Assembly: GCF_052425735.1 (NCBI RefSeq)
Contig: NC_135765.1
Coordinates: forward strand, 27,218,001 to 27,282,000
DNA: 64,000 nt
Direction of reading: 5' to 3'
Source: Oculina patagonica
Lineage: Eukaryota
Shown here one piece after another: positions 28,565-60,501 of the stretch. Under the pieces are notes generated by a model, which ran no database searches, had not been told where the DNA came from, and worked only from the letters and a program-made list of their open reading frames with translations. A program made the translations under genes and the position numbers. The stretch's first letter is position 1. Each line of letters starts with the position of its first letter.

Positions 28565-29315
28565 GGCTTATCCAAGCGTTCTTAAAAATTTTAGCTGCTT
28601 TCGTTGCCGTCTTCTTGCATTGTTGGATTAAAAAACACAATGGGAATAGAGTGTTGACCTTGAAGGAAGTTAATTATGTTTTATTTCATTACCGACCAGA
28701 GAGTAATAGTCAACAGCAAAGAAAATTTTAAACAGGATTCTGCAAATACGCCTGTCCTTTTCTCTTGCCAATTGTCATGTCATTATTATTCATTATTCTT
28801 GTTGGTCGAAAATGGGACAACATTTGAAAACCTTTTTAATTAAAATATTGCAGGGAAAACGTAATTTTAATACACATGTTGAAATGCTTAAAATAGAAAT
28901 CTAATTAATTTGGAAAGTGCATGTATGTATAATTGCATTTCAAGGTAATTTTGCGCTGAATGGAAAATTAAACAAAGGAAAAACGTCTATGAAAATTACA
29001 AGCTGAGAAAAAACACAAAGTGTACAAACAAAGTCCTTTTATCAGTTGCTTCATATAAATTTTAGGAATAAATATAAATGTTTTGTGTTATTCAGAAAGA
29101 GGATTTTCATTACAAGGCTAGATGAGGACAGGTGGTTATATAGAATCCCTTTTCAACATTCCCTCTGCTCTTGAAATGACTTTGGTGAGAGCCAAATAAA
29201 TGATTTATAAACTTCAGTCAGGGTTTTCATTGTATTCCAAGCTATTTGTTTTCCACAAATCAAGGCGACAACCAAAGCCGTTCTTGCTTTGAATGAAAGA
29301 AAACTCGAAAAAGCT

Positions 29316-30251
29316 ATGGAAAGTAATTTTTCTTGGCCTTCTAATGATTCTGATAAAAACAACGTTTTACGATTTAACAACTACTTTAAAGAAGAAATCA
29401 GTTTCTGGATCGCAATGGTTATAATCAATGCTATTATCTGCGTTACTGCGTTATTTGGAAACTCTGTGATTCTAGTTACAATTTGGAAGACATCTTCTCT
29501 GCATTCAGTAGCGAATATCTTACTGGCAAGCCTCGCTGTATCAGACCTTGCTGTTGGATTGATCGGCCAGCCCATGTATATTGGAGGCATTGTAAGCAGG
29601 AAGCATACATTTTTCTTAATTTTTAACATTATGGGTACATTCTTTAGCATGGCGTCTTTCCTCAACATAACAGCAATAGGTATCGATCGTTTGCTCGCTC
29701 TTGAATTACATTTGCGATATCATGTAGTAGTGACACCGTTTCGAGCGACTGCGCTCGTTATCTTTATTTGGGTCATTTCTGGTATTTTTGCTAGCGTCCG
29801 AAGCTGGCATTTAATGGTATTTTACAGTGCCCCAACAGCAACCTTTATCAGCCTTCTTCTTGTAAACTTTGTTGTTTATTTAAAAATCTATCTTATTGTT
29901 CGACGCCATCAGAGACAGATTCAACAACAAAATAATCAACAACAACAAGAGAATAACATTTTCAGAGTAAAAAGATTCAAGAGAACTGCTTTAAACACAT
30001 TTCTTGTATACATTTTACTTCTTTGTTGCTACACACCTTATTCCTGTGTCATCAGCTTTATGGTCATTGCAGGTGTAAACTTTCCACCAGGTTTTTATGT
30101 CACAACGTCTACATTAGTTTTCCTTAATTCCTCTTTAAACCCTTTATTGTACTGTTGGCGAGATCGAGAGATTCTGCACTGCCGTGAAGCAACTGTTTCG
30201 ACGTTGTTTTTAACGTATTTTATTCCAAGAGATATTGACCATGGTTTTTAA
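29316..30251 (+). CDS. Intronless class A GPCR, subfamily B copy 1 (C-tail frameshifted)
   Basis: 7TM with ATG at 29316 (the ORF track starts at a TTG). One extra base near 30177 alters the tail after WRDREI. Confidence 0.88.
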   Translation: MESNFSWPSNDSDKNNVLRFNNYFKEEISFWIAMVIINAIICVTALFGNSVILVTIWKTSSLHSVANILLASLAVSDLAVGLIGQPMYIGGIVSRKHTFFLIFNIMGTFFSMASFLNITAIGIDRLLALELHLRYHVVVTPFRATALVIFIWVISGIFASVRSWHLMVFYSAPTATFISLLLVNFVVYLKIYLIVRRHQRQIQQQNNQQQQENNIFRVKRFKRTALNTFLVYILLLCCYTPYSCVISFMVIAGVNFPPGFYVTTSTLVFLNSSLNPLLYCWRDREILHCREATVSTLFLTYFIPRDIDHGF

Positions 30252-30887
30252 AAGTTTTGGAATAATATATTAGGCGTTATTCAAACTAAAACCTTACAGG
30301 CGAAATTAGTTTCTCAGAAAGAAGTAAAAGTTTTTACTGCCCGACGTCTTTAGCACCCTTGATCGCTAACGCTTCGTCTTAAAAGACTAAGTGTTGCATA
30401 GAATGCACGTCGTTAAGTGGTTCATAGTGTGCAACGATGTTATTTAGAGATTTTCATACGGTTTTCCCCCTTTTGTCTACCTGCACAAATGTTTGGCAAT
30501 GTAAACAGCTTAAGGTGGCTTGAACAAAAATGTATATAAAGTTAACATCACGCACGAGTTTTTGTTATTTACATGCATATGAGGAAAAACCCCTTTCTTA
30601 TCAGACGTTTTAATATATCGGTGTCGTTTACTTTTTACCAGGTTCTTTTACTGGGTTTTTACCGGTTCTTTAATGTTCCTGGACATCTACGCCGTAACAT
30701 GTCTCTAAAATAGTTTCTTGTCTTTTAAATTTGTTATGTTGATTTTTACAAGCAACTTTTGGTTAATGGCGTGACTGCTTTAGTTTTGGAAAAGAACTGA
30801 TATATTAAATCACTTTGCGACGTGAAAACGAGGTGGCATCTTTAAGGTGCACAAGGCTGTGTACGCATCAGCTAAGTGAAATGGACA

Positions 30888-31092
30888 GGGGAGCAGGGTT
30901 GGTGCAGTTTCGAGAGCGCTCGCCTCCCACTTATGTGGCTCAGGTGCGATTCTGGCCCGGTATCATATCTGGGTTGAGTTTGTTGTTGGTTTTCGCCTTG
31001 CTCCGAGGGCAATTCTCCGGGTTCTCCGGGTTTCCTTCCTCCTGAAGAACCAATGTTTTCAAATTCCAATTCTACCAAGATAGAGGACTCGC
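30888..31092 (+). mobile_element. tRNA-derived SINE (degenerate)
   Basis: tRNA-like head with A/B-box remnants and a TTCTCCGGG..CTCCGG core; duplicated at 39653-39857. Confidence 0.7.
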
Positions 31093-31710
31093 TTCCCAAC
31101 AAACATTTTTACAAGTGTGCTTTCATATTATTGTTATTATTTGTTTGACGTACTCGCTTCCCTGCAAAGTTGAATACGATCAAACAGATACTTGTTACAT
31201 CGTATTTATCAACAAAAACGCAGTGAAAACGAAAAATATTACAAGATGACACCCAAGTTTGTTGGGTGGCCACGGTAAGGCGCGTCACACTGTGAAACCA
31301 GCAAGCGCTGATGTGGCAGCCTCTCCAGATATAGCCATTAATTATGGATGAACAAGGCACAAAGTTATACGCATGAGCACAAGCTCTATTTGTGAGTGGT
31401 AATTTCCAGGTGATTTCCCTCGTTCAATCGATCAAAATGTTGAACAAAATATTACAATGAATATGTGTACAACCGAAATGTAATTTATTTATTTTAAAAA
31501 TCCAATCTGCAAGTTGGTATTTAAACAGCAATATAGCGACTTTTATCATGGATATTACATTAATTTCGAAGTAATGTTATTAATATTTTATGGAATGTGA
31601 AAATGAACCTAGAAAGACAATTTCTAAAATCACTTTAAAAAAAATGAATCCTGATTGGTATAAAGTTTTCTTTTTAAATGAGATTTCACAGCGCATGGTA
31701 AGAAACTTAT

Positions 31711-32017
31711 CACAGCATGAAAATTGGGATTTACATTAAATTAAAGGTCGTTAAATCTGTTGTAAAGTCGGTTGTCCAACTTACACCATTAATTAAATGT
31801 TGGAAAGGTGGTTAAACCGACCTTTACACTACCGTGTGTAAATGTGATTTAAAGCTAGTGTAAAGAAGTCTCTTTATCTTCCTTTACACTTGAGGCTAAA
31901 GCTGGGATAAAGGTCAGCTTTAAAAAATGTAAAAACGGCCTATAGCTGAATAAATTCCAAATTTACGCCAGCTTTATTTAGGCTTTACACCACGGTAAAG
32001 TTATGTTTTCATGCTGT
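31711..32017. mobile_element. CACAG-terminated MITE, copy 2
   Basis: Inverted copy of 22718-23036; empty site in copy B at ~40495. Confidence 0.75.
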
Positions 32018-32430
32018 CTTAGATGACAAAAGCTTTGGGCCTTTTTTGTATGTCTCTGCTTTTTTATTTGGGTTGTCAGTCAGTTGACAAATGTCAATCA
32101 GTTGAAGTGTGATTCCAAATTCAAGCTGACTTACCTTATAACAAAAGAAAATTTAATAACTATGGTAAATTTTAAGCTTGATGAAAATTAAGAAAATGTT
32201 TATTTTGTTCATTGTCCCACGCTCGTGACAATGGACATTTCATCTTTATCAAAAGAAAACTTATTTACTGAAAGCGTAAAAATCTCCTGTGCTATTGACA
32301 TAACGTTGCTGGCGGTAATGAAAAAATAATTAATAAACTTCAGTAAATGTAAAAATTGCTTTTTTTAATATTAGAAGAAGACAACATAAGCACCCAAGCC
32401 TAAAAGAAAGAGAAAAAGCTCGGACCAGCC

Positions 32431-33330
32431 ATGGAAATTAATTTTACTTGGCCTTCTAATAATTTTGCCGAGAACAACCCTAGTAGAGACCTACCTGTTA
32501 TCTACGGATTTTCTGAAACAGACCTGAATTTCAAGATCGCAAACTCCGTTATCATTGTTATTCTCTCCTTCACGGCACTATTCGGAAACTCAGCGCTTCT
32601 AACAACAATTTGGAAGACATCTTCTTTGCATTTGGTGGCAAATATCTTACTGGCAAGTCTTGCTGTATCAGATCTTGCCGTTGGCTTGATTGCTCAGCCC
32701 TTATTTATAGCCAACATGTTTAGCAGCAGAGAAAATACTGTAAACAAAGTTATAAACATTTTAGGTCCCATTCTGTCTCTTGCATCATTTTTCACCATTA
32801 CAGCAATTGCGGTCGATCGTTTGCTCGCTCTTCAATTGCATTTAAGGTATAAAGCAGTGGTGACACCATTTCGTGTGACATGGGCAGTTATCCTCATTTG
32901 GGTATTCGCGGTCATTTTTGCAAGTACCAAACTTTGGATTGCAAGCCTTTCTCGCACTATCGTATCATTTATGATTATTACCATTCTGGTTGCAAACTTT
33001 GCTGTTTATTTGAAAATCTATCTTATTGTTCGACGCCATCAAAATCAGATTCAACATCAACAACAGCAGGCGAACAACGAAAACTTGTTCAGCGTTAAAA
33101 GATTCAAGAAATCTGCAATAAACACATTTCTTGTGTATATTTTACTCCTGTGCTGTTATGCGCCTTATTCGCTCAGCGCCCAAATGACATTTTCAGGTGT
33201 AGGCGTTTTACAAAATGTCTATATGACGACTTTTACATTAGTTTTTCTGAATTCTTCTTTAAACCCTTTATTATACTGTTGGCGAGATCGAGAGATACGC
33301 ACAGCCATGAAACAACTGTTATGCTGTTGA
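32431..33330 (+). CDS. Intronless class A GPCR, subfamily C copy 1 (299 aa)
   Basis: Intact 7TM ORF with the family motifs. Confidence 0.93.
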   Translation: MEINFTWPSNNFAENNPSRDLPVIYGFSETDLNFKIANSVIIVILSFTALFGNSALLTTIWKTSSLHLVANILLASLAVSDLAVGLIAQPLFIANMFSSRENTVNKVINILGPILSLASFFTITAIAVDRLLALQLHLRYKAVVTPFRVTWAVILIWVFAVIFASTKLWIASLSRTIVSFMIITILVANFAVYLKIYLIVRRHQNQIQHQQQQANNENLFSVKRFKKSAINTFLVYILLLCCYAPYSLSAQMTFSGVGVLQNVYMTTFTLVFLNSSLNPLLYCWRDREIRTAMKQLLCC

Positions 33331-35962
33331 CTTAATGCATTTTTGTGTCCGGAGGAAATCTTCTGCAGGAGTTTTCCTTACAACAATTACGGTACTGTGT
33401 GGAAAAGAGAAATCTAAGCGACATTTTGTCCATGTTCTTCCGAAATTTCGCCGAAATTGTGTCTGAGATGGATACTAACAACTTGCTAAAATGTCAGAAT
33501 TCACGAAGTCACACCGCCCCTTTGCGATATAACAACAGTTAGTAGAAACTCAGCTGTGTTCTATTGGAAATCCGCGAATCCGATTGGTTACAAAGCGAAC
33601 AACTAGAGCACTTCTGTTTCCCAGAACGGAGAAGGGTGGGTACCCTAAGAAAAGAAAAACAAAATTACGCAAAAAGTGAAAGAATAATTAGTGATCGTCA
33701 TATTTTGAATTCAAAGTTTTTGTAGGGGAGTGTGAAGCAACGGTTCCTACCTAGAGCTACGTCAGAGCTACGTCATCAATATTGAATTTTGGGGTCGAAT
33801 CTGAGGCGTTTCACGAACGGTGATAACTTAGCACGTGAAGAGGGCGTCTGTTAACTCGCGTTAAGTAGAGATGTATATATAAAAGTAAGTTATAGTTAAT
33901 AGTTTTAAAAGTAAGTGACTTTTCTCATATATCTGGCCTTCGCAACATGCCGCTAAGAGGTAAACCACTCGTCAAGCTAAAAAAAGGCGCTTGATAAACA
34001 CAAACCATTAATTTATAAAATGCTATTTTGCTACTCACATGTTTCAACGCTGATTGTAAATGAAAAGAGTTAAATTTAAAGTAATTATAAAGGTAAATCC
34101 ATCCGTTTGGAATATCAAAAACCATGGAAAAGTGAAAAATATCGAGTCAAATGAAATAGAACTGCAATTTTTTTAAATAAATTACGTTGCAAGAAAATGA
34201 TAACAAAAATTTGGAGGAAAAAAGGAAAAATATATGGTCAAAAGGTTCAAATTAGAAATATACAGTGGAAAAAGGACAAAAAAGGAACAAGTTCGAAATA
34301 GAAGTCGTTTATTTTTATATAGTTTGCTCAAAGAAATGTTTTTGCATGTTATGTCCTTTATAAAAGAATGTATTTTTGGACGATACGAGACATAGTTGTA
34401 GAAGAATTGTTTTGGTTTTAATTGTAAGAAAAAAAACGTAAACCGAAATGAAGGCTTTTGAAAAGAGTATATTTGTAATGGTATTGTTGTAAATATTAAT
34501 TGTTAAAAATTGTTCAAGATTAAGAGGTGTAACTGAATTTTCACCAAATAAAAGCCCGACATTTGTTGCACATTACGTCTTGGCTGGGTAATTCAAGTAT
34601 ACAGTCCGCCCAAGCAACAAATTCGCAGAAAAAGGTCAATTCTGAATGTTTCTGATTGATATAATGGAATTTAAGCAAACCGCAACAACGACGAAGCCAT
34701 TTTGGAGCCCCTCCTGGGGGGGGGGGGGGGGAATATTCCTTTGTTTCCCCCAAAATTTTACCTGCTGTTCCCTCAAAGTATTTTGTCGAGTTTTGTGATC
34801 CGTGTTTCCTTAAATATCAGAAACACATCTTTTGTTTCCGTGTTCCCAGCTTTATTTTCCTTTTCTTCCCTTGTTCGTATTTTGTTTGATGTTGTAATTC
34901 ATGCAGTGAGGAGACTCACCAATGACTTAAAATAACGACAATTTACAAAATAAACCCTCCCCACCTAACTCTTCGCAAGTCGTTTGTCAGTGTCGTATTG
35001 ATTACCGAGGGAAGCGCGGGCGCGAGACCGGGGTTGTATCCCCTCTGCTTCCCCGAGTCGACCCATTCTACCTAAAAATCCTTCCAAGAATAATCCCTTT
35101 CAAATATATAAGACAATCATGGGCGATTCATTAGATTTAGCTCTTGAAGAAAGACCATACGACTTCCAATTATAAGCCTCTTTATTATTGGGAAACTTGT
35201 TTTATTTTTGACATGTATGTCATTAAAATATACCTTGCCTTGCGATGTTGATAACAAACTGTAGTTTTATATCGTTATGACAAGAGAGTTATACCACATG
35301 GGTGATCTTGTATGTACTTTATTTTTTCATACGCAATAGCCTTCCAAATAAACAAATACTTTGGAAACGAAAAATCGATTTTCGATGATTTTTAATTCAT
35401 CAATCGGTATAACAGTGTTTTTTGTTTCTTCAACGTGCAACCCTAAACGAATCCTTGACAACTAAAAACAGGGCACGAAGTTCTCGGTGTTGTGGTATGG
35501 GGTGCTTTCCATTAAGCCAAATATTTCGGAAATTTTGGTCGGAAGTCAAATGGAAAGTTGCATTTCGGTTCGGTCTGACCAGAATATTCAGGACCACCTC
35601 TGAAGGTCATCTACTTTGACCGTTCGAACCGAAATATGCAGTTCCATTTTGAGAAACTGTTCAGTTGTCTTACTTCAGTACAGTAACTTCTCACACTACA
35701 CAGAATGCGGGAAACTGGTTTACAAAGGAATGCAAAACCATTCCACTCGGTTGGCCAGATTCAGTAAGCGGAAAATTTTGTTCCATTTTACAAAGATCAG
35801 TTCCTGTTGGGAATGCTCGGAGAGGACAAATAAAGTATTCATTTCAGTTCAGTTCAAAACTGTTTAATGAATGTTTACTTCATACAGCCATGACTGTAAA
35901 TTCATTGCGCCAAACGCGTAAGGGAGCAAGAAAACAGAAAAAACCGATCAAAAGAATACTTG

Positions 35963-36847
35963 CTAAACGGCAGTGCGGATCTCTCTATCTCGCCAACAGT
36001 ACAACAAAGGATTCAGAGAAGAATTAAGAAAGATCAATGTCGTTGTAGTGTAATAAACACCTGGCCAAAGCCTTATACCTACAAGAAACATTTTGAAAAC
36101 GATAGAATAAGGCAAGTAACAAAAGAGAAGTAAAATGAACACGATAAATGTGTTGAAAACAGTTTTCTTGAGTCTTAATACCCTGCGAATTACACTCTCT
36201 TCTTGTTGTTGATGGTGATGAGGATGATGATGAATTTGTCTTTGATGGCGTCTTACAATGAGGTAGATTTTCAAATAAACACCAAAGTTTCCAGCTAGTA
36301 GGCAGAGAAATACGAATGATGGAACCGTGTCACATAATGTCGAGTACCATAAACATGAACTTGTAAAAATACCAGTGAAAACCCAAATCGACACAACGAC
36401 CCAAGTGGCACGAAACGGTGTCACAACTGCACGGTATCTCAGATGTAACTGAAGAGCAAGCAAGCGATCGACTGCAATTGCTGTTATTATGATGAATGAA
36501 ACGATGGTCAAAAGAGTACCCAAAATGTCACCAAGCTGGAAAAGAGTATGTTCTCCACTCAGCATGTTTCCTATAAACATGGGCTGAACAAGCAAGCCGA
36601 CAGCAAAGTCTGATACAGCAAGACTTGCTAGCAAGATGTTTGTCGCCGAATGCAATGAAGGCGTCTTCCAAATTGTTATTAGAAGCGCTGAATTTCCAAA
36701 CAGTGCCGTGAAGCAGATAATAGCATGGATTACGCAGATTGCTATCATGTAATTTAGTACCAGTTCAGAATAGTCGAGCTTAGAAAGGTGTTCACCTGAT
36801 ATGTTCTTGTCAGAATTATTGACAAACCAAGAACTATTATCTTCCAT
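35963..36847 (-). CDS. Intronless class A GPCR, subfamily A copy 2 (294 aa)
   Basis: Intact 7TM. The TAG after RTAV trims about 5 C-terminal residues. Confidence 0.92.
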   Translation of the reverse strand: MEDNSSWFVNNSDKNISGEHLSKLDYSELVLNYMIAICVIHAIICFTALFGNSALLITIWKTPSLHSATNILLASLAVSDFAVGLLVQPMFIGNMLSGEHTLFQLGDILGTLLTIVSFIIITAIAVDRLLALQLHLRYRAVVTPFRATWVVVSIWVFTGIFTSSCLWYSTLCDTVPSFVFLCLLAGNFGVYLKIYLIVRRHQRQIHHHPHHHQQQEESVIRRVLRLKKTVFNTFIVFILLLFCYLPYSIVFKMFLVGIRLWPGVYYTTTTLIFLNSSLNPLLYCWRDREIRTAV

Positions 36848-37608
36848 GGCTTATCCAAGCGTTTATTCAGAGTTCTTAAAAATCTTAGCTGCTTTGGTTG
36901 CCGTCTTCTTGCATTGCTGGATTAAAAAAAACACAATTGGAATAGAGTATTGACCTTGAAGGAAGTTTATTATGTTTAATTTCATTACTGACCACAGAGT
37001 AATTGTCAGCAGCAATGGAAATCTTAAATAGGATTCTTCAAACACGCCTGTCCTTTTCTCTTGCCAATTGTCATGTCGTTATTATTGTTGGTAGATCCAG
37101 AGAAAATGGAACAACATTTGAAAACCTTTTTAATTAAAATATTGCAGGGAAAACGTAATTTTAATATACATGTTGAAATGCTTAAAAAAGAAATCTAATT
37201 AATTTGGAAATACATGTATGTATAATTGCATTTCACGGTAATTTTGCCCTGAATGGAAAATTAAACAAAGGAAAAACGTCTATGAAAATTACAAGTTGAG
37301 AAAAAACACAAAGTGTACAAACAAAGTCCTTTTATCAGTTGCTTCATATAAATTTTAGGAATAAATATAAATGTTTTGTGTAATTCAGAAAGAGGATTTT
37401 CATTACAAGGCTAGATGAGGACAGGTGGTTATATAGAATCCCTTTTCAACATTCCCTCTGCTCTTGAAATGACTTTGGTGAGAGCCAAATAAATGATTTA
37501 TAAACTTCAGTCAGGGTTTTCATTGTATTCCAAGCTATTTGTTTTCCACAAATCAAGGCGACAACCAAAGCCGTTCTTGCTTTGAATGAAAGAAAACTCG
37601 AAAAAGCT

Positions 37609-38505
37609 ATGGAAAGTAATTTTTCTTGGCCTTCTAATGATTCTGATAAAAACAACGTTTTGCGATTGAACAACTACTTTAAAGAAGAGATTAGTTTCTG
37701 GATCGCACTGGTTGTAATCAATGCTATTATCTGCCTCACTGCGTTATTCGGAAACTCTGTGATTCTACTAACCATTTGGAAGACATCTTCTCTGCATTCA
37801 GTAGCTAATATCCTCCTGGCAAGTCTTGCCGTATCAGACCTTGCTGTTGGATTGATCGGCCAGCCCATGTATATTGGAGGCATTGTAAGCAGGAAGCATA
37901 CATTTTTCTTAATATTTAACATTATGGGTACATTCTTTAGCATGGCGTCTTTCCTCAACATAACAGCAATAGGTATCGATCGTTTGCTTGCTCTTGAATT
38001 ACATTTGCGATATCATGCAATAGTGACACCGTTTCGAGCGACCGCGCTCGTTGTATTTATTTGGGTCATTTCTGGTATTTTTGCCAGCGTCCGCAGCTGG
38101 CATTTAATGGTATTTTACAGTGCCCCAACAGCAACCTTTATCAGCCTTCTTCTTGTAAACTTTGTTGTTTATTTAAAAATCTATCTTATTGTTCGACGCC
38201 ATCAGAGACAGATTCAACAACAAAATAATCAACAACAACAAGAGAATAACATTTTCAGAGTAAAAAGATTCAAGAGAACTGCTTTAAACACATTTCTTGT
38301 ATACAATTTACTTCTCTGTTGCTACATACCTTATTCCTTTGTTATCAGCGTTATGGTCATTGCAGGTGTAAACTTTTCACCAGGTTTTTATGTCACAACA
38401 TCTACATTAGTTTTCCTTAATTCCTCTTTAAACCCTTTATTGTACTGTTGGCGAGATCGTGAGATTCGCACAGCCGTAAAGCAACTGTTTCGACGTTGTT
38501 TTTAA
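37609..38505 (+). CDS. Intronless class A GPCR, subfamily B copy 2
   Basis: Intact 7TM with ATG at 37609. Confidence 0.93.
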   Translation: MESNFSWPSNDSDKNNVLRLNNYFKEEISFWIALVVINAIICLTALFGNSVILLTIWKTSSLHSVANILLASLAVSDLAVGLIGQPMYIGGIVSRKHTFFLIFNIMGTFFSMASFLNITAIGIDRLLALELHLRYHAIVTPFRATALVVFIWVISGIFASVRSWHLMVFYSAPTATFISLLLVNFVVYLKIYLIVRRHQRQIQQQNNQQQQENNIFRVKRFKRTALNTFLVYNLLLCCYIPYSFVISVMVIAGVNFSPGFYVTTSTLVFLNSSLNPLLYCWRDREIRTAVKQLFRRCF

Positions 38506-38807
38506 CGTTTTTTTTTTTTCACGAAATATTGACTATGATTTTTAAAACTTGTGGAATAATATATTAGGCTTTATCCAAACTCAACCTTTACCGATGAAAT
38601 TAGTTTCTCAGAAAGAAGTAAAGGTTTTTACTCCCCGACGTCTTTAGCACTCTTGATCGCTAACGCTACGTCTTGAAAGCCTAAGTGTTGCATAGAATGC
38701 ATGACGTTGAGTGCTTCATAATGTGCAACGATGTTTTTTGAAGATTTTCATGCGGTTTTTCCCCTTTTGTCTACCTGCACCAATGTTTGGCAAAGTAAAC
38801 AGCTAAA

Positions 38808-39309
38808 GGGCCTGTTTATGTGGAGTAGAGTTGTCCCTGGTAGGAGGGTTACCCTCTCCCCCGTGCTATCTTTTACCGAGCGTTTATATGAGAAGGTTGT
38901 CCCTGTTGACCGAGCCAAAACTTGGCCCTCCCGGTTCAAAAGACTGGCGAGAGTTATTTTGAAATATCTATTATGGCGGGCTTTTCTAAAATCAGGAACG
39001 CTGAAACATCCCGGAAGACCACTTTTGACAAATTTACCGCCGACTTCGATGTTGTTTTGGCCGATTCCAGCATTTGCGCATGCTCCGTATCTGTCAACTT
39101 GTCCCTGGTAGGCGAGGCAAAAATTACCAAACTGTTTATATGGAAAAAAGTTGGCTCGCTCCCAAGGGTCACCCTATCTTCAAAGCGAGTGACCCTCAGT
39201 GACCCAGCTTTTTATAAAGAAACGAATGAAAAGCTCTTTCGCCCGGGGTGGCTCGGTATGGAGGTTAACCCTCCTACCAGGGACAACTCTTCTCCAAATA
39301 AACAGGCCC
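38808..39309. mobile_element. PIF/Harbinger-type MITE
   Basis: TIRs of ~50 bp, GGGCCTGTTTA...TAAACAGGCCC. Inserted at a TAA that is empty in copy A (~30511). Confidence 0.8.
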
Positions 39310-39652
39310 TAAGGTGGCTGGAAGAAAAATGCATATAAAGTTACCATCAAGCACGAATTCTTGTTATTTACATGAGGAAAAAACTTTTTCTTATCAGACG
39401 TTTTAATATATTCGTGTCTTTTACTTTTTACTGGTTCTTTAATGTTCTGGACATACACGCCGTAACATTTCTCTAAAATAGTTTCTTGTCTTTTAAATTT
39501 ATTATATTAGTGTTTACGAGCAACGTTTGGTTAATGGCGTGACTGCTCTAGTTTTGGAAAAGAACTGATATGTTAAATCACTTTGTGACGGGAAAACGAG
39601 ATGGCATCTTTAAGGTGCACAAGACAGTGCACGCATCAAAGTGATATGGACA

Positions 39653-39857
39653 GGGGAGCAGGGCTGGCGTATTTGTGAGAGTGCTCGCCTCACACTTATG
39701 TGGCTCAGGTGCGATTCTGGCCCGGTATCATATCTGAGTTGAGTTTGTTGCTAGTTGTCGCCTTGCTCCGAGGGCAATTCTCCGGGTTCTCTGGTTTTCC
39801 TCCCTCCTGAAGAACCAATGTTTCCAAATTCCAATTCTACCAAGATAGAGGACTCGC
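39653..39857 (+). mobile_element. tRNA-derived SINE (duplicate copy)
   Basis: Homologous to 30888-31092. Confidence 0.7.
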
Positions 39858-39861
39858 ATTA

Positions 39862-40082
39862 CAGTGCGACGCGCCTTACCGTGGCCACCCAACAAACATT
39901 TTTACAAGTGTGCTTTCATATTATTATTATTTGTTTGACGTACTCGCTTCCCTGCAAAATTGAATACGATCAAACAGATACTTGTTACATCGTATTTATC
40001 AACAAAAACGCAGTGAAAACGAAAAATATTACAAGATGACACCCAAGTTTGTTGGGTGGCCACGGTAAGGCGCGTCACACTG
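39862..40082. mobile_element. Tc1/mariner-type MITE
   Basis: TIRs of ~36 bp (CAGTGCGACGCGCCTTACCGTGGCCACCCAACAAAC) with TA on the left. The copy A version (~31095-31292) has lost its left end. Confidence 0.75.
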
Positions 40083-40912
40083 TGAAACCAGCAAGCGCTG
40101 ATATGGCATCCTCTCCAGATATAGCCATTAATTATGGATGAACAAGGCACAAAGTTATACGCATGAGCACAAGTTCTATTTGTGAGTGGTAATTTCCAGG
40201 TGATGTCCCTCATTCAATCGATCAAAATGTTGAACAAAATATTACAATGAATATGTGTACAACCGAAATGTAATTTATTTATTTTAAAAATCCAATCCAA
40301 GTTGGTATTTAAACAGCAATATAGCGACTTTTATCATGGATATTACATTAATTTCGAAGTAATGTTATTAATATTTTATGGAATGTGAAATGAACCTAGA
40401 AAGACAATTTTTAAAATCACTTTTTTTAAAAAAAAAATGAATCCTGATTGGTATTAAGTTTTCCTTTTAAATGAGATTTAACAAGGTAAGGAACTTAGAT
40501 GACAAAGGCTTTAACCCTTTTTTGCATTTCTCTGTTTTTTTGATGTGGTTTGTCAGTCAGTTGACAAATGTCAATAGGTTGATGTGTGATTCCAAATTCA
40601 AGCTGAGTTACCTTATAACAAAAGAAAACTTAATAAATATGGTAAATTGTAAGCTCGATGCAAAATAAGAAAAAGTTCATTCTGTTTATCATTGTCCCAC
40701 GCTTGTGACAATGGACATTTCATCTTTATCAAAAGAAAAGTTATTTACTGAAAGTGTGAAGATCTCCTGTGCTATTGACAAAACGTTGCTGGAGATAATG
40801 GAAGAAAAATTAATTTAACTTCAGTGGATGCAAGAATTGCTTTTTTTGAACAGTACAAGAAGACAACAAAAGCGCTCAAACCTCAAAGAAAGAGAGAAAG
40901 CTTGGAACGGCC

Positions 40913-41821
40913 ATGGAAATTAATTTAACCTTGCCTTCCAATAATCTTGCCAATAACAACCCAAGTAGAGACCTCTTTGGTATCCACAGATTTTCTGAAC
41001 AAGACCTGAATTTCAAGATCGTAAACACCGTACTCAATGTTATTATCTTCCTCATGACGCTATTTGGAAACTCTCTGATTTTAATAACAATTTGGAAGAC
41101 ATCCTCTTTGCATTCGGTGGCGAACATCTTACTGGCAAGTCTTGCTGTATCTGATCTTGCCATTGGCTTGGTTGTCCAGCCCTTGTTAATAGCAAACATG
41201 TTTAGCGAGGTGTATATTTTTGGCTTAGCTATGGACATTTTATGTCCCATCCTATCTCTGACGTCTTTTTTCACCATTTCAGCAATTGCGGTAGATCGCT
41301 TGCTTGCTCTTCAGTTACATTTAAGGTATAAAGCAGTGGTGACACCATTGCGTGTGACATGGGCAGTTATTCTCATTTGGGTATCCGCTGCCATTTTTGC
41401 AAGTACCAAACATTGGATTGCAAGCCTATCTAACGCTGTCATATCCTCTGTGGTTATTACCATTCTTGTTGGAAATTTTGTTGTTTATTTGAAAATCTAT
41501 CTTATTGTTCGACGCCATCAAAGACAAATCGAACACCATCATCATCAACAACAACTGGTGGCGATCAACGCGAACATGTTCAGCGTTAAAAGATTCAAGA
41601 AATCTGCAATGAACACATTTCTTGTGTATATTTTTCTTCTGTGTTGTTACGCTCCTTATTCTCTCAGCGCCCAAATGATACTTGCAGGTGTAGTTATTTC
41701 ACCAAAGGTCTATTTGACGACTTTTACTTTAGTTTGTCTCAATTCTTCTCTAAACCCTTTACTGTACTGTTGGCGAGATCGAGAGATACGCACAGCCATG
41801 AAGCAACGGTTATGCTGTTGA
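40913..41821 (+). CDS. Intronless class A GPCR, subfamily C copy 2 (302 aa)
   Basis: Intact 7TM ORF. Confidence 0.93.
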   Translation: MEINLTLPSNNLANNNPSRDLFGIHRFSEQDLNFKIVNTVLNVIIFLMTLFGNSLILITIWKTSSLHSVANILLASLAVSDLAIGLVVQPLLIANMFSEVYIFGLAMDILCPILSLTSFFTISAIAVDRLLALQLHLRYKAVVTPLRVTWAVILIWVSAAIFASTKHWIASLSNAVISSVVITILVGNFVVYLKIYLIVRRHQRQIEHHHHQQQLVAINANMFSVKRFKKSAMNTFLVYIFLLCCYAPYSLSAQMILAGVVISPKVYLTTFTLVCLNSSLNPLLYCWRDREIRTAMKQRLCC

Positions 41822-48350: not shown

Positions 48351-49274
48351 ATGGAAATTAATTTTACCTCGCGTTCCAGTAATTTTGCCAAGAACAACCC
48401 TAGAAGAGTTCTACCTGATCTCCATGGATTTTCTGAACAAGAACTGAATTTCAAGATCGCAAACACCGTAATTAATATTATTCTCTCCCTCACGGCGCTA
48501 CTCGGAAACTCTGCGATTCTACTAACAATCTGGAAGACGTCCTCTTTGCATTCGGCGGCAAATATCTTGCTGGCAAGCCTTGCTGTATCAGACGTTGCCG
48601 TTGGCTTGATTGTCCAGCCCTTGTTTATAGCAAACATGCTTAGTAGCGGAGAAAATACTGTTCACTTAGCTTTGAACATTTTGGGTCCCGTCCTGGCCAT
48701 CGCGTCTTTTTTTACCATTACAGCGATTGCGGTCGATCGCTTGCTCGCTCTTCAATTGCATTTAAGGTATAAAGCGGTAGTGACACTATTTCGTGTGACA
48801 TGGGCAGTTATCCTCATTTGGGTATTCGCGGTCATTTTTGCAAGTTCAAAACTTTGGATTGCAAGCTTATCTCACACTATCATATCTATTATGATTATTA
48901 CCATTTTGGTTGCAAACTTTGCTGTTTATTTCAAAATCTATCTTATTGTTCGACGCCATCAAAGACAGATTGAACCTCATCATCAACTACAACTTCAACA
49001 ACAACAACAACAGGCGAACAACGAGAACTTCTTCAGCGTTAAAAGGTTTAAGAAATCTGCTATGAACAAATTCCTAGTGAACATTTTTCTTCTGTGTTGT
49101 TACGCGCCTTATTCTCTCAGCGCCCAAATGAAATTTGCAGGTGTTGTCATTTCACCAAATGTTTTTATAACAACTTTTACATTAGTTTATCTTAACTCTT
49201 CTCTAAATCCTCTTTTGTACTGTTGGCGAGATCGAGAGATACGCACAGCCATGAAAAGACTGTTTTGCTGTTGA
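48351..49274 (+). CDS. Intronless class A GPCR, subfamily C copy 4 (307 aa)
   Basis: Intact 7TM ORF. Confidence 0.93.
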   Translation: MEINFTSRSSNFAKNNPRRVLPDLHGFSEQELNFKIANTVINIILSLTALLGNSAILLTIWKTSSLHSAANILLASLAVSDVAVGLIVQPLFIANMLSSGENTVHLALNILGPVLAIASFFTITAIAVDRLLALQLHLRYKAVVTLFRVTWAVILIWVFAVIFASSKLWIASLSHTIISIMIITILVANFAVYFKIYLIVRRHQRQIEPHHQLQLQQQQQQANNENFFSVKRFKKSAMNKFLVNIFLLCCYAPYSLSAQMKFAGVVISPNVFITTFTLVYLNSSLNPLLYCWRDREIRTAMKRLFCC

Positions 49275-52064: not shown

Positions 52065-52671
52065 TAAGGCAGATCTCCTAAACCTTTTCACACTGAAAAT
52101 GTTGTCCTTATTCGCCTCTTGCTGTTGACGTTGAATCGGTCTGTGATGGCGACGAACAATGAGGTAGATTTCGAAATAAATAACAAAGTTAACAAGGAGC
52201 ACGTAGAAAGCAAAAGCCGATGCGTCAATGTCAGATGCCCTTGTATTTCTTAGTTCCGCGACTGTACAAATACTGGAAAACATCCAAATAGAAATGACCA
52301 GCCAAGTGACACGAAACAGTGTCACTACTTCTTCGTACCTCAAGTGTAAATGAAGAGCGAGCAAGCGATCGACTGCAATTGCTATCAAAGTGAAGAAAGA
52401 AGTGGAGCAAAAAAAAATGTTAACACGTAAGGGGACAGTTTCATTCCCGGTTAAGAAGAACACCACAACTAGGGGCTGACCGATCAATCCAACAGCAAGG
52501 TCTGATACAGCAAAACTTGCCAATAAGATATTCTCCACCGAATGCAATGAAAATGTCTTCCAAATCGCTGTTAGAATCGCAGAGTTCCCAGAGCAGTAAG
52601 CAGAGAATGGCGTGTATTACAACCATTGCGTTCCAGATATTTAATTCGTGTTCAGAATATCTGTTATTGGT

Positions 52672-53080
52672 ATATACACACTCAGTGATCTTGGTGTTTC
52701 AAGCAATCTGATTGGTTCGTAATCTCGGGCTAATGAGCATTATTCACTCCCTACGGAGTGAATAATGCTTGATCCAAACTGAAACAAAATGGCCGGCGTA
52801 AACTCGCGTTTCGCCGGCGTTTCTGAATCGCAAATACTAAGAATACAAGAAGATGCTGAACCAGAAAAGACAGAAAAAGGCTAAGAAATTTGGCCTGATG
52901 GTTTTCAAAGTAAGAGAAGACTACATATTTCGCAATTTGCAGCACAATGTCCACACAACTCGAGTACTAAAACGATAAACAATTGCTTATCGTGAAGTTG
53001 CTCTTCGCCCGGCATCGGCAGAAATGAATACCGCAGATTCTACCACTATTCACCTCGATTTCAAATAATAATTGTTAAAT
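52672..53080. mobile_element. Non-autonomous element inserted in the pseudogene N-terminus
   Basis: Interrupts an otherwise contiguous GPCR N-terminal sequence; AT-rich ends. Confidence 0.65.
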
Positions 53081-53890
53081 ATCAAAAGCGCTTCCACCTG
53101 AGTTGTTCCTGGCAAAAGTATTCAAAGGTCAAGTAAAGTTTAAATTTCCTTGACTGATTCCGGCGTTCTTCAGTTGAAAGCTATGATTGCCTTTGTTGTT
53201 GTCTTGAATTTTCTGAAATTCATTTATTATTTGTTTCATTACCGTCAGCACGGTAGAGCAATAGCATAAGAAATATTTACATTTTCATAAAATGAGAGTT
53301 CTTTTGAGAATTCTGTGCATGTGCATACATCTGTCATTTGCCTTTTCATATGCGATGAAATTCCTGCTGTTAATTATATATTCAATTGGTCACTGTTAAA
53401 TAACATAAATATTCACTACAGAAAGAGTACTCTTTACCCTCAGTTTATTGTTTATTATCGTACTAAAGATAAGTTGGGTGGAAATCATTCCAACTATTTC
53501 AAAAACTCTCCTTCAGTTCTAATTCCTGTATTCTGATTTCTTGTAGAATTTAACTACGTTTCTTCATAATTATAGTGTTATTTAATTTCCATGAAAGCAT
53601 ATCCGGTATATCCGGTACATTTTATATGGTGGGCGAGTGAATGAATCGCGAACTGTCTTTCATTACTGTCTTGCATTATAATATATATACTTTGAACTTT
53701 AATAGCTTTCACCTAAATTACAATGGTGTCATAACGTTCAGATTCCCCATATAGGAATCATTTTCTAAACGTACTCAGTTAAAAGTACCCTCATCTCCAA
53801 AAGGGATAAACATTATTACCTTCCTACACAATACAAACTCACATATTATTAAAGTAAATGGTCTGAACTTAGAAGTATCAGTAGAACTGT

Positions 53891-54493: not shown

Positions 54494-55399
54494 TCAATGG
54501 CAAAATACTTGCTTTATAGCTGTGCGGATTTCACGATCTCGCCAACAGTACAATAAAGGATTTAGAGAAGAATTAAGAAAAATTAATGTCAAAGTTATTG
54601 TATAAACTCTTGGCGACATGCCACCGTCCACAAGAGCAAAGCAATAAGGCATATAACAAAACAGAAGTAATATGTACACCATGAAAGTGTTTAAAGCTGA
54701 TTTCTTGAATCTTGTAACGCTAAAGATGTTTGCATTATTCGCCAGTTGTTGTTGTTGTTGTTGTTGCTGATGTTGAATCTGTGTTTGATGGCGTCGAACA
54801 ATGAGGTAGATTTTCAAATAAACTGAAAAATTTCCAACTAGAAGACTGATTATCGTAACAAATTCGACAGTGTCAAGAAATCTTAGGGTCAAATTCGACA
54901 GCAGCGTTCTTACACCAGAGAACACCCAAATAAAAATAACAACCAAAGTCACACGAAAGGGTGTCACTACTTCATGATACCTCAAATGTAACTGAAGAAC
55001 AAGAAAGCGATCGACTATAATTGCTGTAATGGTGACGAACGACGCGCAGCCCAAAAATGAACTCGAATTGTTAAAAAGATGTCTTACAATATCATTTCTG
55101 GTCAGCAAGTATGCTGCAAACGAGGGCTCGACAATTAAGCCAACAGCAAGGTCTGATACAGCAAGACTTGCCAGTAAGAAATTTGCCACCGAATGCAAAG
55201 ACGATATCTTCCAAATTGTTATTAGGATAGCAGAGTTTCCGAACAACGCTGTGAAGGAGAGAGAGACATTCAAAATGCTTACAATCCAGTTATGCAATCC
55301 AATGGGTGCTTCTTCAAAAATTTCGTTTGGTTCTAAAAGGTTAATGAAAGTGTCATTTTCTTTAGAGTTATTAAATGGCCAAGAACAGTTAATGTTCAT
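54494..55399 (-). CDS. Intronless class A GPCR, subfamily D copy 1 (301 aa)
   Basis: Intact 7TM; DRF, CYMPY and NPLLY motifs. Confidence 0.93.
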   Translation of the reverse strand: MNINCSWPFNNSKENDTFINLLEPNEIFEEAPIGLHNWIVSILNVSLSFTALFGNSAILITIWKISSLHSVANFLLASLAVSDLAVGLIVEPSFAAYLLTRNDIVRHLFNNSSSFLGCASFVTITAIIVDRFLVLQLHLRYHEVVTPFRVTLVVIFIWVFSGVRTLLSNLTLRFLDTVEFVTIISLLVGNFSVYLKIYLIVRRHQTQIQHQQQQQQQQLANNANIFSVTRFKKSALNTFMVYILLLFCYMPYCFALVDGGMSPRVYTITLTLIFLNSSLNPLLYCWRDREIRTAIKQVFCH

Positions 55400-56908
55400 G
55401 GCTGATTCGAGCGTCCTGATTAGAGCGAAGTTACTTTGTTGTTTTCTTGCTCTGTTGGAAAGAAAATAGATTGGTTTAATAATATATTGTCTTTTACTAA
55501 ATTTTAATAATTTTCTATTTCATTTCCGCTAGGAAAGTGGTTTCAAGAGAACAGGAAATCTTTAAACGAGATGTTGCATATTCACCTGCTTGCTTTGCAA
55601 TAGCCATTAAGTGCGCAGTTTTATAAAGCAAGCCTACAAGTCGAATATAAGTGTCATCGAAAGGACAAGGCTCTACAAAGAAAAAAATAATTGTGAGTCC
55701 CTTTTTAATTTTCATTCTATAAAGAAAAGGAAAGAACAATCTTTTTTCTGGAATTGCCTCTCTATTTTTTTTTAATTCGCCATTTATACAATGTAAACAC
55801 CTTGCCTTCGAAATTACAATTTACTTACTTGCCACAAATGTATACATACCGTAGTCGTAAAAATCATGTTGGCAAAATCAAAGCAAGATCTTTTGCCCAT
55901 TGCTTAGAAAATTCAGGAGTTTAATGTACAATAAGTGACAACCATTTTTTTTTTCAAACTTAAAGCGCGTGGGAAATTTAAATTCCCATTGAATGTGTTT
56001 TTTTTTTTCAATTAACTTTAACAACGCTATAAACCAATAGGGACCTCTAGATGAGAGTACGGGCACGAGAACCAGTGACTCAGAAAATTAATGGGAGTTC
56101 TTTTGAGAATTCTGTGCATGTGCATACATCTGTCATTTTTCTTTCACATGTGGTGGCAACCTTGCTGTTATTATAAATTCAATTGTTTACTGTTAAATAA
56201 CATAAAAATTCAGTACAAAAAGTGTACTTTTTGACCTCAGTTCGATGTTAATTATTTTACTGAAGACAAAGTGAGTGGAAATTATTCACTTTTTTCAAAA
56301 GCTGTCTTTCATTTCTGCGTTCAGATTTCTTATAAAAATTAATTACATATCTTTCAAATTTATTTTATTACCATGAAAACAGCCGGTATATCTGGACTAC
56401 TTTATACGTAGCTAGTGCGTGAGTGAATTATATAAGAACTGCCTTTCATAAGTGTCCTATATTATATTATGTATATTTTAAACTTTAATAGCTCTAACTA
56501 TAATTACAATGGTGTCATACCGTTCACGTTTTTCAATTAGAAATCATTTACTTAACTTTACTTAACCTTCCTACACGTTACAAACCTTCGAACAAGCTTT
56601 ATATATATTAAAAAATAGTAGCCACAATTACACATGGTGTACCTATTTTAAAAAATCAACAAGAAATCATTGGCGAAGTTGTGACTGAGAAAGAAAATGC
56701 GAATTTTCGCAAAAGACGTGCGCAATACTCTTGATTGTCTGCACACCTAGGGCTGTAAACGTAGAGGGCAAACTTCTGGAAAAAAAATGTTCTTTAAACT
56801 ACATGGCAATATCACATGCTATGCGGCACTTAAAAAGCGGGGCCCGAAGGAGTATATTGGGAACTGAGATTGGCGCAATTGTTTACTGGAAAAATGGGAT
56901 TTAGTTAA

Positions 56909-57166: not shown

Positions 57167-57207
<41 letters not shown>

Positions 57208-57278
57208 TGGGGTTCGAACCCACGACCTCCCGCACAGCAGTCCGGCGCTCTACCAACTGAGCTAACCAGGCGGCGGTT
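56909..57278 (-). mobile_element. Full-length tRNA-derived SINE (Nin-domain-like) with L2-type 3' tail
   Basis: The minus strand has A box TAGCTCAGTTGG, B box GGTTCGAACC, core GGACGATAAACCGTAGGTCCCGT and tail AGCGCATTTGA...ATGCGCTATATAAAT(TCATTA)n. Confidence 0.85.
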
Positions 57279-57502: not shown

Positions 57503-58447
57503 TTAACCGAAAAACAATTGTTTTATGGCTGTGCGGATCTCTCGATCTCGCCAACAGTACAATAAAGGATTTAAAGAAGAATTGAGGAAAACTAATGTCA
57601 AAGTTATTGTATAAACTCTTAGCGACATGCCACCGTCCACAAGAGCAAAGCAATAAGGCATGTAACATAACAGAAGTAATATGTACACCATGAAAGTGTT
57701 TAAAGCTGATGTCTTGAATCTTGTTACGCTAAAGATGTTTTCATTACTCGCCTGTTGCTGTTGTTGATGATGTTGTTGCTGTTGTTGAATCTGTGTTCGA
57801 TGACGTCTAACAATGAGGTAGATTTTCAAATATACAGCAAAGTTTGCAACAAGAAGACTTATCGTCGTAGCAACTTCGACAGTGTCAAATAATTTCAGGT
57901 TTAAGTTCGACAATAGCGTGGCTACGGCAGTGAACACCCAAATAAATATAACTACCCAAGTCACACGAAAGGGTGTCACAATTGCATGATACCTCAAATG
58001 TAACTGAAGAACGAGCAAGCGATCGACTGTAATGGCTGTAATGGTGATCAAGGACACAGAGCACAGAAAGTAACTACAAATGTTAAAAAGTAGGTTAACG
58101 ATGCGTATTTTGCTTAGCAAGTATGCTATAAGCAAGGGCTGGACAATCAATCCAACAGCAAGGTCTGATACAGCAAGACTTGCTAGTAGGATATTCGCCA
58201 CCGAATGCAAGAAAGACGTCTTCCAAATTGTTAGGATAACCACAGTGTTTTCAAACAGCGCTATTGAGGCGAGAAAGGCATTCAAAACACAGATTATGAT
58301 CCATACACTATCATTAAAGGGAGCTTGTTCAAAAGTTTCGTTGGAATCAAGAGGCTCGATGCAAGTGTCATTCTTTTCAGAATTGTTAAAAGGCCAAGTG
58401 CAGTTCATTGTCGTGTTTGAGTCGAGCGTGATTGCATTTGAAGACAT
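57503..58447 (-). CDS. Intronless class A GPCR, subfamily D copy 2 (314 aa; alternative ATG at 58408)
   Basis: Intact 7TM ORF. Confidence 0.92.
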   Translation of the reverse strand: MSSNAITLDSNTTMNCTWPFNNSEKNDTCIEPLDSNETFEQAPFNDSVWIIICVLNAFLASIALFENTVVILTIWKTSFLHSVANILLASLAVSDLAVGLIVQPLLIAYLLSKIRIVNLLFNICSYFLCSVSLITITAITVDRLLVLQLHLRYHAIVTPFRVTWVVIFIWVFTAVATLLSNLNLKLFDTVEVATTISLLVANFAVYLKIYLIVRRHRTQIQQQQQHHQQQQQASNENIFSVTRFKTSALNTFMVYILLLLCYMPYCFALVDGGMSLRVYTITLTLVFLNSSLNPLLYCWRDREIRTAIKQLFFG

Positions 58448-59128
58448 CTTATGAAGATATGGCTGCTTTTGTCGTCTGTTTGCTCTGCTGGAGAGAAATT
58501 GATTGGATTTGCAATATTAATCTTACTGAACTTCATTAATTTTCTATTTATTACCGCCCGCAAAGCATTGTCAAAAGAAGAGGAAATCTTAGCAAGCTTA
58601 CTAAATACATCTGTCGCTTTCAGTTGCTATATGATTAAAAATTTATCAGATTTAGTTTTTCTTGATATCAGAATAATTTAAGACGAGATAAGTGTTAGTC
58701 ATTGACTTAAAAGATCAACTTTTAAGTCTGATCACTGAACGGAGACTTTATTCTTTGCCTATTTTTGTCTTTCCCTCAAATTTTGTCTTTCGTTTTCATT
58801 TTCGGATAAATTTATTTTTTAGACGGGGCCGAAAAAGATTCGATTTCTAGTCTTTTTCACAAAGCAAAATGAGCAAGATTGACCAATATTACGCGTGGTT
58901 ATTTTTAATAATTGCTAAATATACGTAGTTAAATTTGCCATATTCAGTGCATATTTGAAACTTCGCTCAAAAGAGATCCGTCCTACATCTCGTAAAGCGC
59001 TCCACAACCACAGCAAATTCGGAAAATGAGTTTTGTTTGTTTTTCACGCCTCCGAAACAAAAAAGTTGGGGGGAAATATGTGTGGTTTTACAACTTTCAC
59101 ATTTTATTGAATAAGGCAAGTGTTAAAA

Positions 59129-59795
59129 TCAATGGCAAAACAGTTGCTTCGAAGCTGTGCAGATCTCTCGATCTCGCCAACAATACAATAATAGGTTTAG
59201 GGAAGAATTAAGGAACCCTAATGTAACAACAGAAAAATATACAATTGGCGAAATGATTGTAACTCCTAAAAGTACCATTTTGACGGCAGCGAACGAACAA
59301 GCCATGTAACAACATAGTATCAAAATGTACACGAAAAATGTGTTCAAAGCAGATTTCTTGAATTTTTTTACGCTAAAAATAGAATCGTCATTCGAATCTT
59401 GTTGTTGATGTTGAATCTGTCTCTGGTGGCGTCGAACAATGAGATAAATTGTGAAATAAACGGCAAAGTTTCCAGCTAAAAGGCAGGTGATTAAAGTATA
59501 TAACGCAATGTCGGCTAGGCTTAAAGTCCACCGTTTCGTGAAAGGAAAAATAGCAGTGAATACCCAGATAAAAATTACCGGGTAACACGAAATGATGTCA
59601 CCACTGCACGGTATCTCAAATGTAACTGAAGAGCGAGCAAGCGGTCGACTGCAATTGCTGAAACGGCGATGAAAGATACCGTGCACAAGAGATGTCTCAA
59701 AATGACAACATTTCTCAGTGCAAAAAGTATCATACACTGTTATTCTAGGACCCAACATTTTCGCTATACACAAGGGCTGGACAACCAAGACAACA
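59129..59795 (-). pseudogene. GPCR pseudogene (5'-truncated, frameshifted)
   Basis: Starts in TM2 (VVQP). The TM3/DRL region is out of frame, TM5-TM7 are recognisable, and NP has changed to NL. Confidence 0.88.
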
Positions 59796-60501
59796 AGTGA
59801 TGTCTGTAGGGGAGTTAATCTTTAAAGTTTAAAGAAAATAAGTTTTATCACAACTCATGTAAAGTCCCTGATTTGATTGATTAAACTTTAGTTACCATAG
59901 CAACAGTGCAAAAGCTCGATTTTCATTCAATATTCGCACAATATTTTTGTAATTAAAAAATCTATCGATAGGTCAAATTACCTACAGTATGAGATAGTTA
60001 TTCAACAAACAATATGTGCTGAACAATGGCTCTGAAAATAAAAATAAATGACTTTTGAAAACATATAGTTAATATTGCATGAAAGTATTAATGGAATTTA
60101 TGAAAATAAAACAGCATGCAAATAACGACTTCTGTTCGAAAGGATATGCTATTATTTTATTCTTTTATAGCGTGAATTCGTTTTTTATGTCATCCCTCGG
60201 CAGCGTTGCTTAATTTATGAATTGGAAGAATGATTACATTTTCCAAACAATTATAGTATGACAGATCACGCAGCAATCGCGAGAGAGAGCCAGAAAGTGT
60301 GTACTGAGTCCCCAAAACCTTTATTAATTTCCTGTGCTATTGAAATAACTTTGTTAGCAGCAGTGAAATGAATAAGTAATAAACCACAGTTAATGTAAAT
60401 ATTGTTTCTGAAGCTGTTTTTTTTTTCCTCAGTAGAGAGAGACGACAGCGATATATATAGCTTTGAACGAAACGACGAACAGAAACTAATTGCATGCAAC
60501 G

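Follow-up and report, generated by a model that had tools for sequence, protein, structure and literature searches.

A conserved block upstream of a tandem receptor subfamily in the coral Oculina patagonica and its reading as a putative TATA-less promoter

The 64,000 nucleotides of the coral Oculina patagonica analyzed here (contig NC_135765.1, positions 27,218,001 to 27,282,000 of the forward strand; this whole stretch is called the window, and positions are counted from its first letter) carry a tandem cluster of class-A G protein-coupled receptor (GPCR) genes. Upstream of these genes, on their coding strand, we find a conserved block of about 130-150 nucleotides (nt) made of three short boxes. 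We consider it reasonably probable that this block is a TATA-less, subfamily-specific proximal promoter together with the start of the leader, which tandem duplication would have passed on and mild selection preserved. The transcription start and the beginning of the 5' leader probably lie within the block, and the putative promoter looks TATA-less.

The receptor cluster and its copies of the block

Open reading frame (ORF) calls and six-frame matches delineate, between 27.6 and 61.4 kb of the window, 11 intact intronless (single-exon) ORFs of about 300 amino acids each, together with three fragments or pseudogenes. The cluster ORFs match Pfam 7tm_1, the rhodopsin class (class A) of GPCRs, and their nearest database proteins share a contig with proteins named 'histamine H2 receptor-like [Oculina patagonica]' by NCBI. 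Tandem duplication has amplified no gene family of coral genomes more than the rhodopsin-like GPCRs, which are of unknown function (PMC10236652). In a partitioned maximum-likelihood analysis of 23 genes the codon positions 1+2 evolve at 0.57 times the rate of the third positions, which we read as a very relaxed or diversifying pattern, typical for chemoreceptor-like families. The receptor family is young, and its synonymous sites are therefore not saturated. One segmental duplication within the cluster, which we judge to be recent, copied the stretch 27671-33333 to 35969-41824 with 85-96% identity; the copied part is a three-gene unit that includes a head-to-head receptor pair.

The initial annotation of this DNA had placed a motif of about 65 bp upstream of 11 receptors of the cluster. 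A profile built from these 11 sites finds exactly 11 matches in the window (nhmmer, E-values from 9e-19 to 2e-32), and the next-best match has an E-value of 0.42. The annotated places on the coding strand, upstream of receptors, are borne out, and every interval found by our model contains the annotated one. The length is not, as the conserved unit measures about 130-150 nt. The upstream position holds as well, but the distance of 60-165 bp from the ATG has to be corrected to about 85-175 nt for the segment that was reported. Ten copies do precede intact receptor genes, while one (53146-53289) stands before a pseudogene. When the boxes described below are searched separately, Box1 with up to three mismatches has 14 matches in the window against 4.3 expected from shuffles, and GCGGTAATGAAA with up to two mismatches has 16 against 6.5. 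All 11 copies share the strand of the next receptor ORF, and the distance from the block end to the ATG is 12-50 nt. The coordinates and bit scores of the blocks, as listed here, come from a covariance-model search (cmsearch); the remnant in the last line was read by eye.

27650-61404, no single strand: tandem class-A GPCR cluster with 11 intact genes and three fragments or pseudogenes (ORFs, Pfam 7tm_1, six-frame matches)
28593-28741, minus strand: block of receptor gene 27650-28564(-), 88.6 bits; the ATG lies 27 nt past the block end
29144-29282, plus strand: block of receptor gene 29316-30251(+), 95.6 bits; head-to-head with the block 28593-28741
32266-32395, plus strand: block of receptor gene 32431-33330(+), 81.8 bits
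36887-37037, minus strand: block of receptor gene 35963-36847(-), 85.9 bits; recent duplicate of 28593-28741
37437-37575, plus strand: block of receptor gene 37609-38505(+), 95.6 bits; recent duplicate of 29144-29282
40746-40877, plus strand: block of receptor gene 40913-41821(+), 82.1 bits; duplicate of 32266-32395
43462-43601, plus strand: block of receptor gene 43635-44546(+), 91.8 bits
53146-53289, minus strand: block of a receptor pseudogene (remnant at about 52083-52677), 62.8 bits; the most degenerate copy of the window
55430-55573, minus strand: block of receptor gene 54494-55399(-), 88.5 bits
58461-58603, minus strand: block of receptor gene 57503-58447(-), 91.5 bits
60314-60451, plus strand: block of receptor gene 60502-61404(+), 83 bits
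48223-48317, plus strand: degenerate remnant before the intact gene 48351-49274(+), nhmmer E-value 0.42

The 11 copies should not be regarded as independent, since six of them stem from the segmental duplication 27671-33333 / 35969-41824, and we count about eight lineages. In the head-to-head gene pairs only about 400 nt separate the two blocks, and therefore little room is left there for distant first exons or far-upstream starts. Searched by tblastn in two frames, the pseudogene behind the block 53146-53289 proves to be frameshifted, with about 380 nt inserted downstream of the block. The receptor fragments or pseudogenes of the cluster lie at 45061-45826(+), 52083-52677(-) and 59135-59584(-); among the three, one is 5'-truncated and has an internal stop, one is frameshifted and carries an insertion, and one is left with the C-terminal half only.

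Structure of the block

The anatomy of the block was derived from 49 copies aligned to a sequence-only model, 38 of which are non-redundant. The three boxes are free of indels, whereas the spacer between Box2 and Box3 varies from 27 to 47 nt and the distance from Box3 to the ATG is variable too. Box1, ATTTCCTNTGCTNTTGA, is exactly 17 nt long in 32 of 34 copies, several of its positions are kept in 35 of 38, and its opposite strand carries a GGAAA-type core. Box2 consists of TAATGAAAT, an AT-rich run and then AAACTTCAGT; it contains TAAT, frequently has CTTCAGT at its end and is 28-29 nt long in 29 of 38 copies. TAAT cores are present in 62 of 64 copies against 51.8 expected, which is barely above chance in such AT-rich DNA. 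The consensus of Box2 also harbors ATGAAATAA, a two-codon upstream ORF. On its 3' side the unit runs through a T-rich tract into the purine-rich Box3, CAACAR..CAAGAAGACAAC..AAGCA, which has 23 nt in 15 of 20 copies.

Several known kinds of element were compared with these boxes. Judged by eye on the consensus, none of the O/E (Ebf), CTCF/conserved sequence element (CSE), E2F and STAT readings fits Box1 or Box2. A structured cis-acting RNA element was rejected: RNAalifold predicts 0 pairs for the block, there is no covariation, and no Rfam family overlaps any of the copies.

Distribution in the genome and in other corals

A search of the genome with the model, in which 150 candidates were scored, gives at least 31 copies of the block: the 11 in the window and at least 20 elsewhere, namely at 24.5-24.8 Mb and 10.2 Mb of the same chromosome and on contigs C6, C14 and C1. 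Apart from the weakest one, on C1, each copy is followed by an ORF or pseudogene of this receptor family. A six-frame protein search groups the window genes with those at least 52% identical to them, a clade of about 28 genes inside a much larger superfamily at 37-47%; all genomic copies but one adjoin members of this clade, and the block is absent from all 13 examined upstream regions of GPCRs at 37-47% identity. The scores fall from 82-96 bits in the window to 33-66 bits on chromosome 8 at 24.5 Mb and to 22-35 bits on chromosome 14, where the C14 cluster holds weak versions only.

The same association is seen outside of this genome. In an ENA assembly, a syntenic cluster whose coding sequence is about 79% identical shows the block upstream of almost all receptors, and further copies occur on contigs of Logan assemblies and of several metagenomes of coral holobionts. 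Among 80 coral metagenome loci it is present in 13 of the 22 with at least 46% protein identity, compared to one of the 58 below that value. Across the window, the other clusters of the genome and the other corals, an ATG of the same family on the same strand follows 9-67 nt after the block end. In a Pocillopora-type homolog (53% protein identity) only Box2 is kept. Given this distribution by protein identity, both in the genome and at the metagenome loci, we regard the block as specific to the subfamily; it is also fixed in position and strand. The initial annotation had proposed a family-specific promoter module with TCAGT as its initiator; an upstream module is supported at the level of the subfamily, genome-wide and in other corals, and the initiator is not supported, with TCAGT in only 25 of 64 copies.

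As a stand-alone motif Box1 was rejected as a general element of the genome: there are seven exact matches elsewhere, none of them beside GPCRs, and we take these as chance matches. A distant GPCR subfamily, 37-43% identical to the window genes, has an island of its own about 110-145 nt before the ATG, different from the block and with the core TTTTTAGAAAATGCACTGAACTGTG; it occurs on C11 at 20.50-20.57 Mb and 19.68 Mb and on C9 at 24.23 Mb (loci L052-L054, L057, L058, L063 and L064). Each GPCR subfamily thus seems to carry its own upstream module.

Conservation of the block

For paralogs whose proteins are 45-65% identical, fourfold sites have an identity of 0.54-0.59 and the block one of 0.62-0.64. 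The 150 nt upstream of it, the next 150 nt and the 3' flank reach only 0.40-0.47, compared to 0.45 for shuffled sequence, so that the claim of the initial annotation that the element persists where the other flanks diverge was confirmed. Between species the block (0.69) likewise far exceeds the adjoining upstream DNA (0.45-0.49).

A column-by-column comparison across 23 genes gives an identity of 0.733 for codon positions 1+2 and of 0.589 for third positions. The Box1-Box2 core reaches 0.677, a value attained by none of 20,000 resamples of third positions; taken singly, Box1 has 0.753 (P 0.0002) and Box2 0.693 (P 0.0012), while Box3 has 0.649 (P 0.07) and the rest of the block 0.591. The relative rates of the partitioned maximum-likelihood fit are 0.97 for the core, 1.37 for third positions and 0.78 for positions 1+2. 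Conservation peaks 90-165 nt from the ATG and is lower closer to it, which argues against a spill-over of gene conversion, or a decay, spreading from the coding sequence. Measured against synonymous divergence, Box1 and Box2 do lie above the third positions of the same genes, but the excess is only moderate and the 3' half of the block has none. We read the constraint as real but mild, centred on Box1 and Box2 and clearest as resistance to indels.

The promoter reading and its alternatives

Each tandem duplication has carried the block along with the intronless coding exon. The surrounding intergenic DNA was scrambled afterwards, and the three short modules have resisted substitutions and, above all, indels. 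Under the promoter reading Box1 and Box2 may bind sequence-specific activators, Box1 via its GGAAA-type core and Box2 via homeodomain/POU-type TAAT cores, and such activators would confer the same cell-type expression on all members of the subfamily. Transcription would begin at or shortly after the end of Box2, and because of this Box3 would fall into the 5' untranslated region (UTR). Past CAGT the density of ATG triplets in the copies of the block falls by a factor of 2.4, from 1.9 to 0.78 per 100 nt, a drop that a leader would be expected to show. Four read runs labelled 'RNA?' gave, over 27600-33599, a few contigs of 150-220 nt at a depth of 2-5, all within the coding sequence of genes 28564(-) and 29316(+), which hints at low-level transcription. 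The homologous contigs from Logan and ENA were rejected as transcripts: they look genomic, and extend well past the block or end in repeats.

A number of observations weigh against this interpretation. The motif TATAWA is depleted, with four of 64 copies carrying it against 13-20 in shuffles, and a TATA box (TATAWAWR about 30 nt before the start) was rejected on this ground; only the Pocillopora-type homolog has TATAAATA at the aligned place. TCAGT is present in nine of the 11 window copies but, as mentioned, in only 25 of 64 overall (6.7 expected), and BBCABW is not above chance (50 copies against 46.6). The drop of ATG after CAGT is no lower than the dinucleotide composition predicts. The low-depth contigs show neither a start nor a splice joint at the block, and their coverage of the leader is almost nil. 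The average constraint, as we see it, is mild: substitution in the 3' half of the block is as fast as at third positions (1.38 against 1.37), and in the comparison of species third positions (0.74) are no less identical than the block (0.69). Furthermore, the identities are inflated by an alignment fitted to the model, and the AT-rich Box2 raises the identity expected by chance. Finally, the association with intact genes is not strict in either direction. Pseudogenes retain the block, and the intact gene 48351-49274, which is about 79-82% identical to gene 32431, is devoid of Box1 and has lost about 25 nt of the AT-rich Box2 including CTTCAGT, with Box3 kept; its upstream homology to the paralogs begins only 30-66 nt before the ATG.

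Alternatively, the block would be a functionless remainder of the duplicated unit, still awaiting decay and possibly homogenised by gene conversion that runs out of the coding region. Such a neutral relic, which survives best among the alternatives and which we nevertheless hold to be unlikely, would stay near synonymous identity both between paralogs and across species, its 3' half would follow third positions, it would persist before pseudogenes, and its score would drop with protein divergence until nothing is left, as is observed. However, a relic does not account for Box1 and Box2 being significantly above the third positions of the same genes, nor for boxes without indels next to a spacer of variable length. 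Box1 is moreover better conserved than the 150 nt upstream, the 3' flank and also the ATG-proximal leader, although the latter is nearer to the coding sequence, and Box2 is still recognisable in the Pocillopora-type homolog.

More doubtful is the proposal that the boxes act on the mRNA, within a transcribed 5' leader, through translation, stability or localisation, and that the true promoter lies farther upstream. The purine-rich and ATG-poor character of Box3 and the leader would suit it, as would the missing canonical TATA box and the inconsistent initiator match. In one coral the contigs from three independent samples all start 630-633 nt before the ATG, and this could be the end of a transcript; a repeat boundary is as likely. 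On the other hand, one would expect of an RNA element some conserved structure or covariation, which the block does not have, and of an upstream promoter some shared DNA, while the DNA upstream of the block is unconserved. The distance of about 400 nt between head-to-head blocks speaks against it as well. Additionally, ATG is not depleted in the Box1-Box2 part (ratio 0.79-0.94), and the upstream ORF lies within the consensus of Box2 itself.

That the block is the 3' end of an intron in the 5' UTR, with the acceptor at TTCAG or at the T-rich tract with CAACAG and a non-coding first exon elsewhere, is improbable. The initial annotation had offered the acceptor at TTCAG as an option, and the arrangement of the letters invites it: in roughly half of the copies Box3 is preceded by a T-rich tract followed by CAG, and in most copies of the window Box2 closes with CTTCAG. 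Yet the AG is not invariant at either site. The A of TTCAG is found in 29 of 36 copies and its G in 26 of 37, the run before it is rich in A and no pyrimidine tract precedes it, and the G of CAACAG is kept in only 15 of 32; the option at TTCAG was accordingly abandoned. Conservation 60 nt farther upstream, in Box1, is not normal for intron ends, and head-to-head pairs give first exons little room. Contig X2 (28412-28603), the one contig that spans gene sequence there, follows the genome without a break over the 39 nt of leader next to the ATG of gene 28564, which excludes a junction in that stretch only. The other splice-site readings, among them a mini-intron that would run for 35-50 nt between CAGT or AAGGT and CAACAG, were rejected for the same lack of an invariant GT/AG.

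Comparison with known systems

The nearest precedent for the putative coral promoter is found in the mouse V1R genes, whose subfamilies have conserved promoter regions containing the transcription starts (Stewart & Lane 2007, PMC1955453; see also Michaloski et al. 2011, PMC3247230). In both cases tandem, fast-evolving GPCR genes with a single coding exon have a homologous upstream region in each subfamily, which fades between subfamilies to short shared motifs. The V1R regions, however, are about 1 kb long, precede a non-coding first exon and have starts mapped by rapid amplification of cDNA 5' ends (5'RACE), whereas the coral block of about 140 nt abuts the coding exon and its start is a putative one. 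Monogenic expression is known for the V1R genes.

Mammalian odorant receptor (OR) promoters are TATA-less and AT-rich, with homeodomain/Lhx2 and O/E/Ebf sites near the start. The coral block resembles them in being AT-rich, apparently TATA-less and gene-proximal, with TAAT in nearly all copies; it differs by the lack of a palindromic O/E site (CCCNNGGG) in the consensus, only subfamily B having a half-site-like ATTCCC. The CSE of the clustered protocadherins has a CGCT core, binds CTCF and loops to a shared enhancer. Like the coral block, it is a short conserved element that precedes each alternative member of a tandem array by a constant distance, but the coral consensus has neither the CGCT core nor a CTCF-like motif, and the coral genes are independent units instead of alternative first exons.

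With regard to core promoters, the initiator (Inr) consensus of Drosophila is TCAKTY. The human one is BBCA+1BW (PMC5287114). TTCAGT of the block conforms to BBCABW and agrees with TCAKTY at five of its six positions, and the spacing from the AT-rich box to the putative start would be as steady as the length of Box2 (28-29 nt in 29 of 38 copies). Promoters of the TATA/Inr type nevertheless differ from the block in the two points given above, the rarity of TATAWA and the absence of TCAGT from most copies outside the cluster.

Another candidate comes from Nematostella, where the POU-IV (Brn3) element has the core AT(A/T)ATT(A/T)AT (Ozment et al. 2021, PMC8846589). A perfect match to this core, ATAATTAAT, occurs in the Box2 consensus, and the flanking ATAAATAATT resembles the Nematostella motif 3 from chromatin immunoprecipitation (ChIP). 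As a conserved site POU-IV was ruled out, with the Nematostella core in nine of 64 copies and in one of the 11 in the window, and the looser bilaterian core in 20 of 64. We therefore consider the match to be a property of the Box2 consensus and not a conserved site.

One could argue that a module common to all members of the subfamily serves the choice of receptors, such that the genes compete through the factors of Box1 and Box2 for a limiting activator or enhancer hub and one or a few receptors are expressed per coral sensory cell. We regard such a choice element as very improbable. A shared promoter is to be expected of genes copied in tandem, as is a shared module in any co-regulated gene family; it does not point to a one-receptor-per-cell switch, and any role in receptor choice is pure speculation. 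If it were true, the block would be an independently evolved cnidarian counterpart of the promoter choice of OR, V1R or protocadherin genes.

Other features of the window and of the related loci

At 61420-62331(-) there is an ORF of 303 amino acids without a Pfam match, mostly under five masked N runs (61434-62569). Downstream of receptor gene 57503-58447, at a distance of about 230 nt, Rfam finds a tRNA match (57199-57271(-), 39.2 bits); it could represent a genuine tRNA gene or else a repeat derived from a tRNA. In the four read runs, interspersed repeats at 30800-31400, 31600-32200 and 33400-33600 stand out by contig depths from hundreds to thousands and many loose ends. Part of these repeats (within 30800-33600) is adjoined by the tRNA-like letters GGTTCGATTCC, which suggests a short interspersed nuclear element (SINE). 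In the other coral, at positions 1-5408 of locus L034, transposon-type genes (THAP/DDE_Tnp_4 and an ORF of 936 amino acids with a YqaJ domain) flank the orthologous cluster, and L033 and L034 resemble two haplotypes, or two copies, of one region.

Implications

The shared block alone reveals no new mechanism; what it provides is a handle on an unstudied family of coral receptors. Such a compact module is a short candidate promoter for reporters, by which the cells that express these receptors could be found, and Box1 and Box2 are defined sites for the isolation of the factors that bind them. Nature has supplied the controls as well: the intact gene 48351 without the boxes would correspond to a promoter deletion, and a pseudogene with the boxes is its counterpart. 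Since different GPCR subfamilies of one genome have different upstream islands, regulatory diversification may track the diversification of the receptors.

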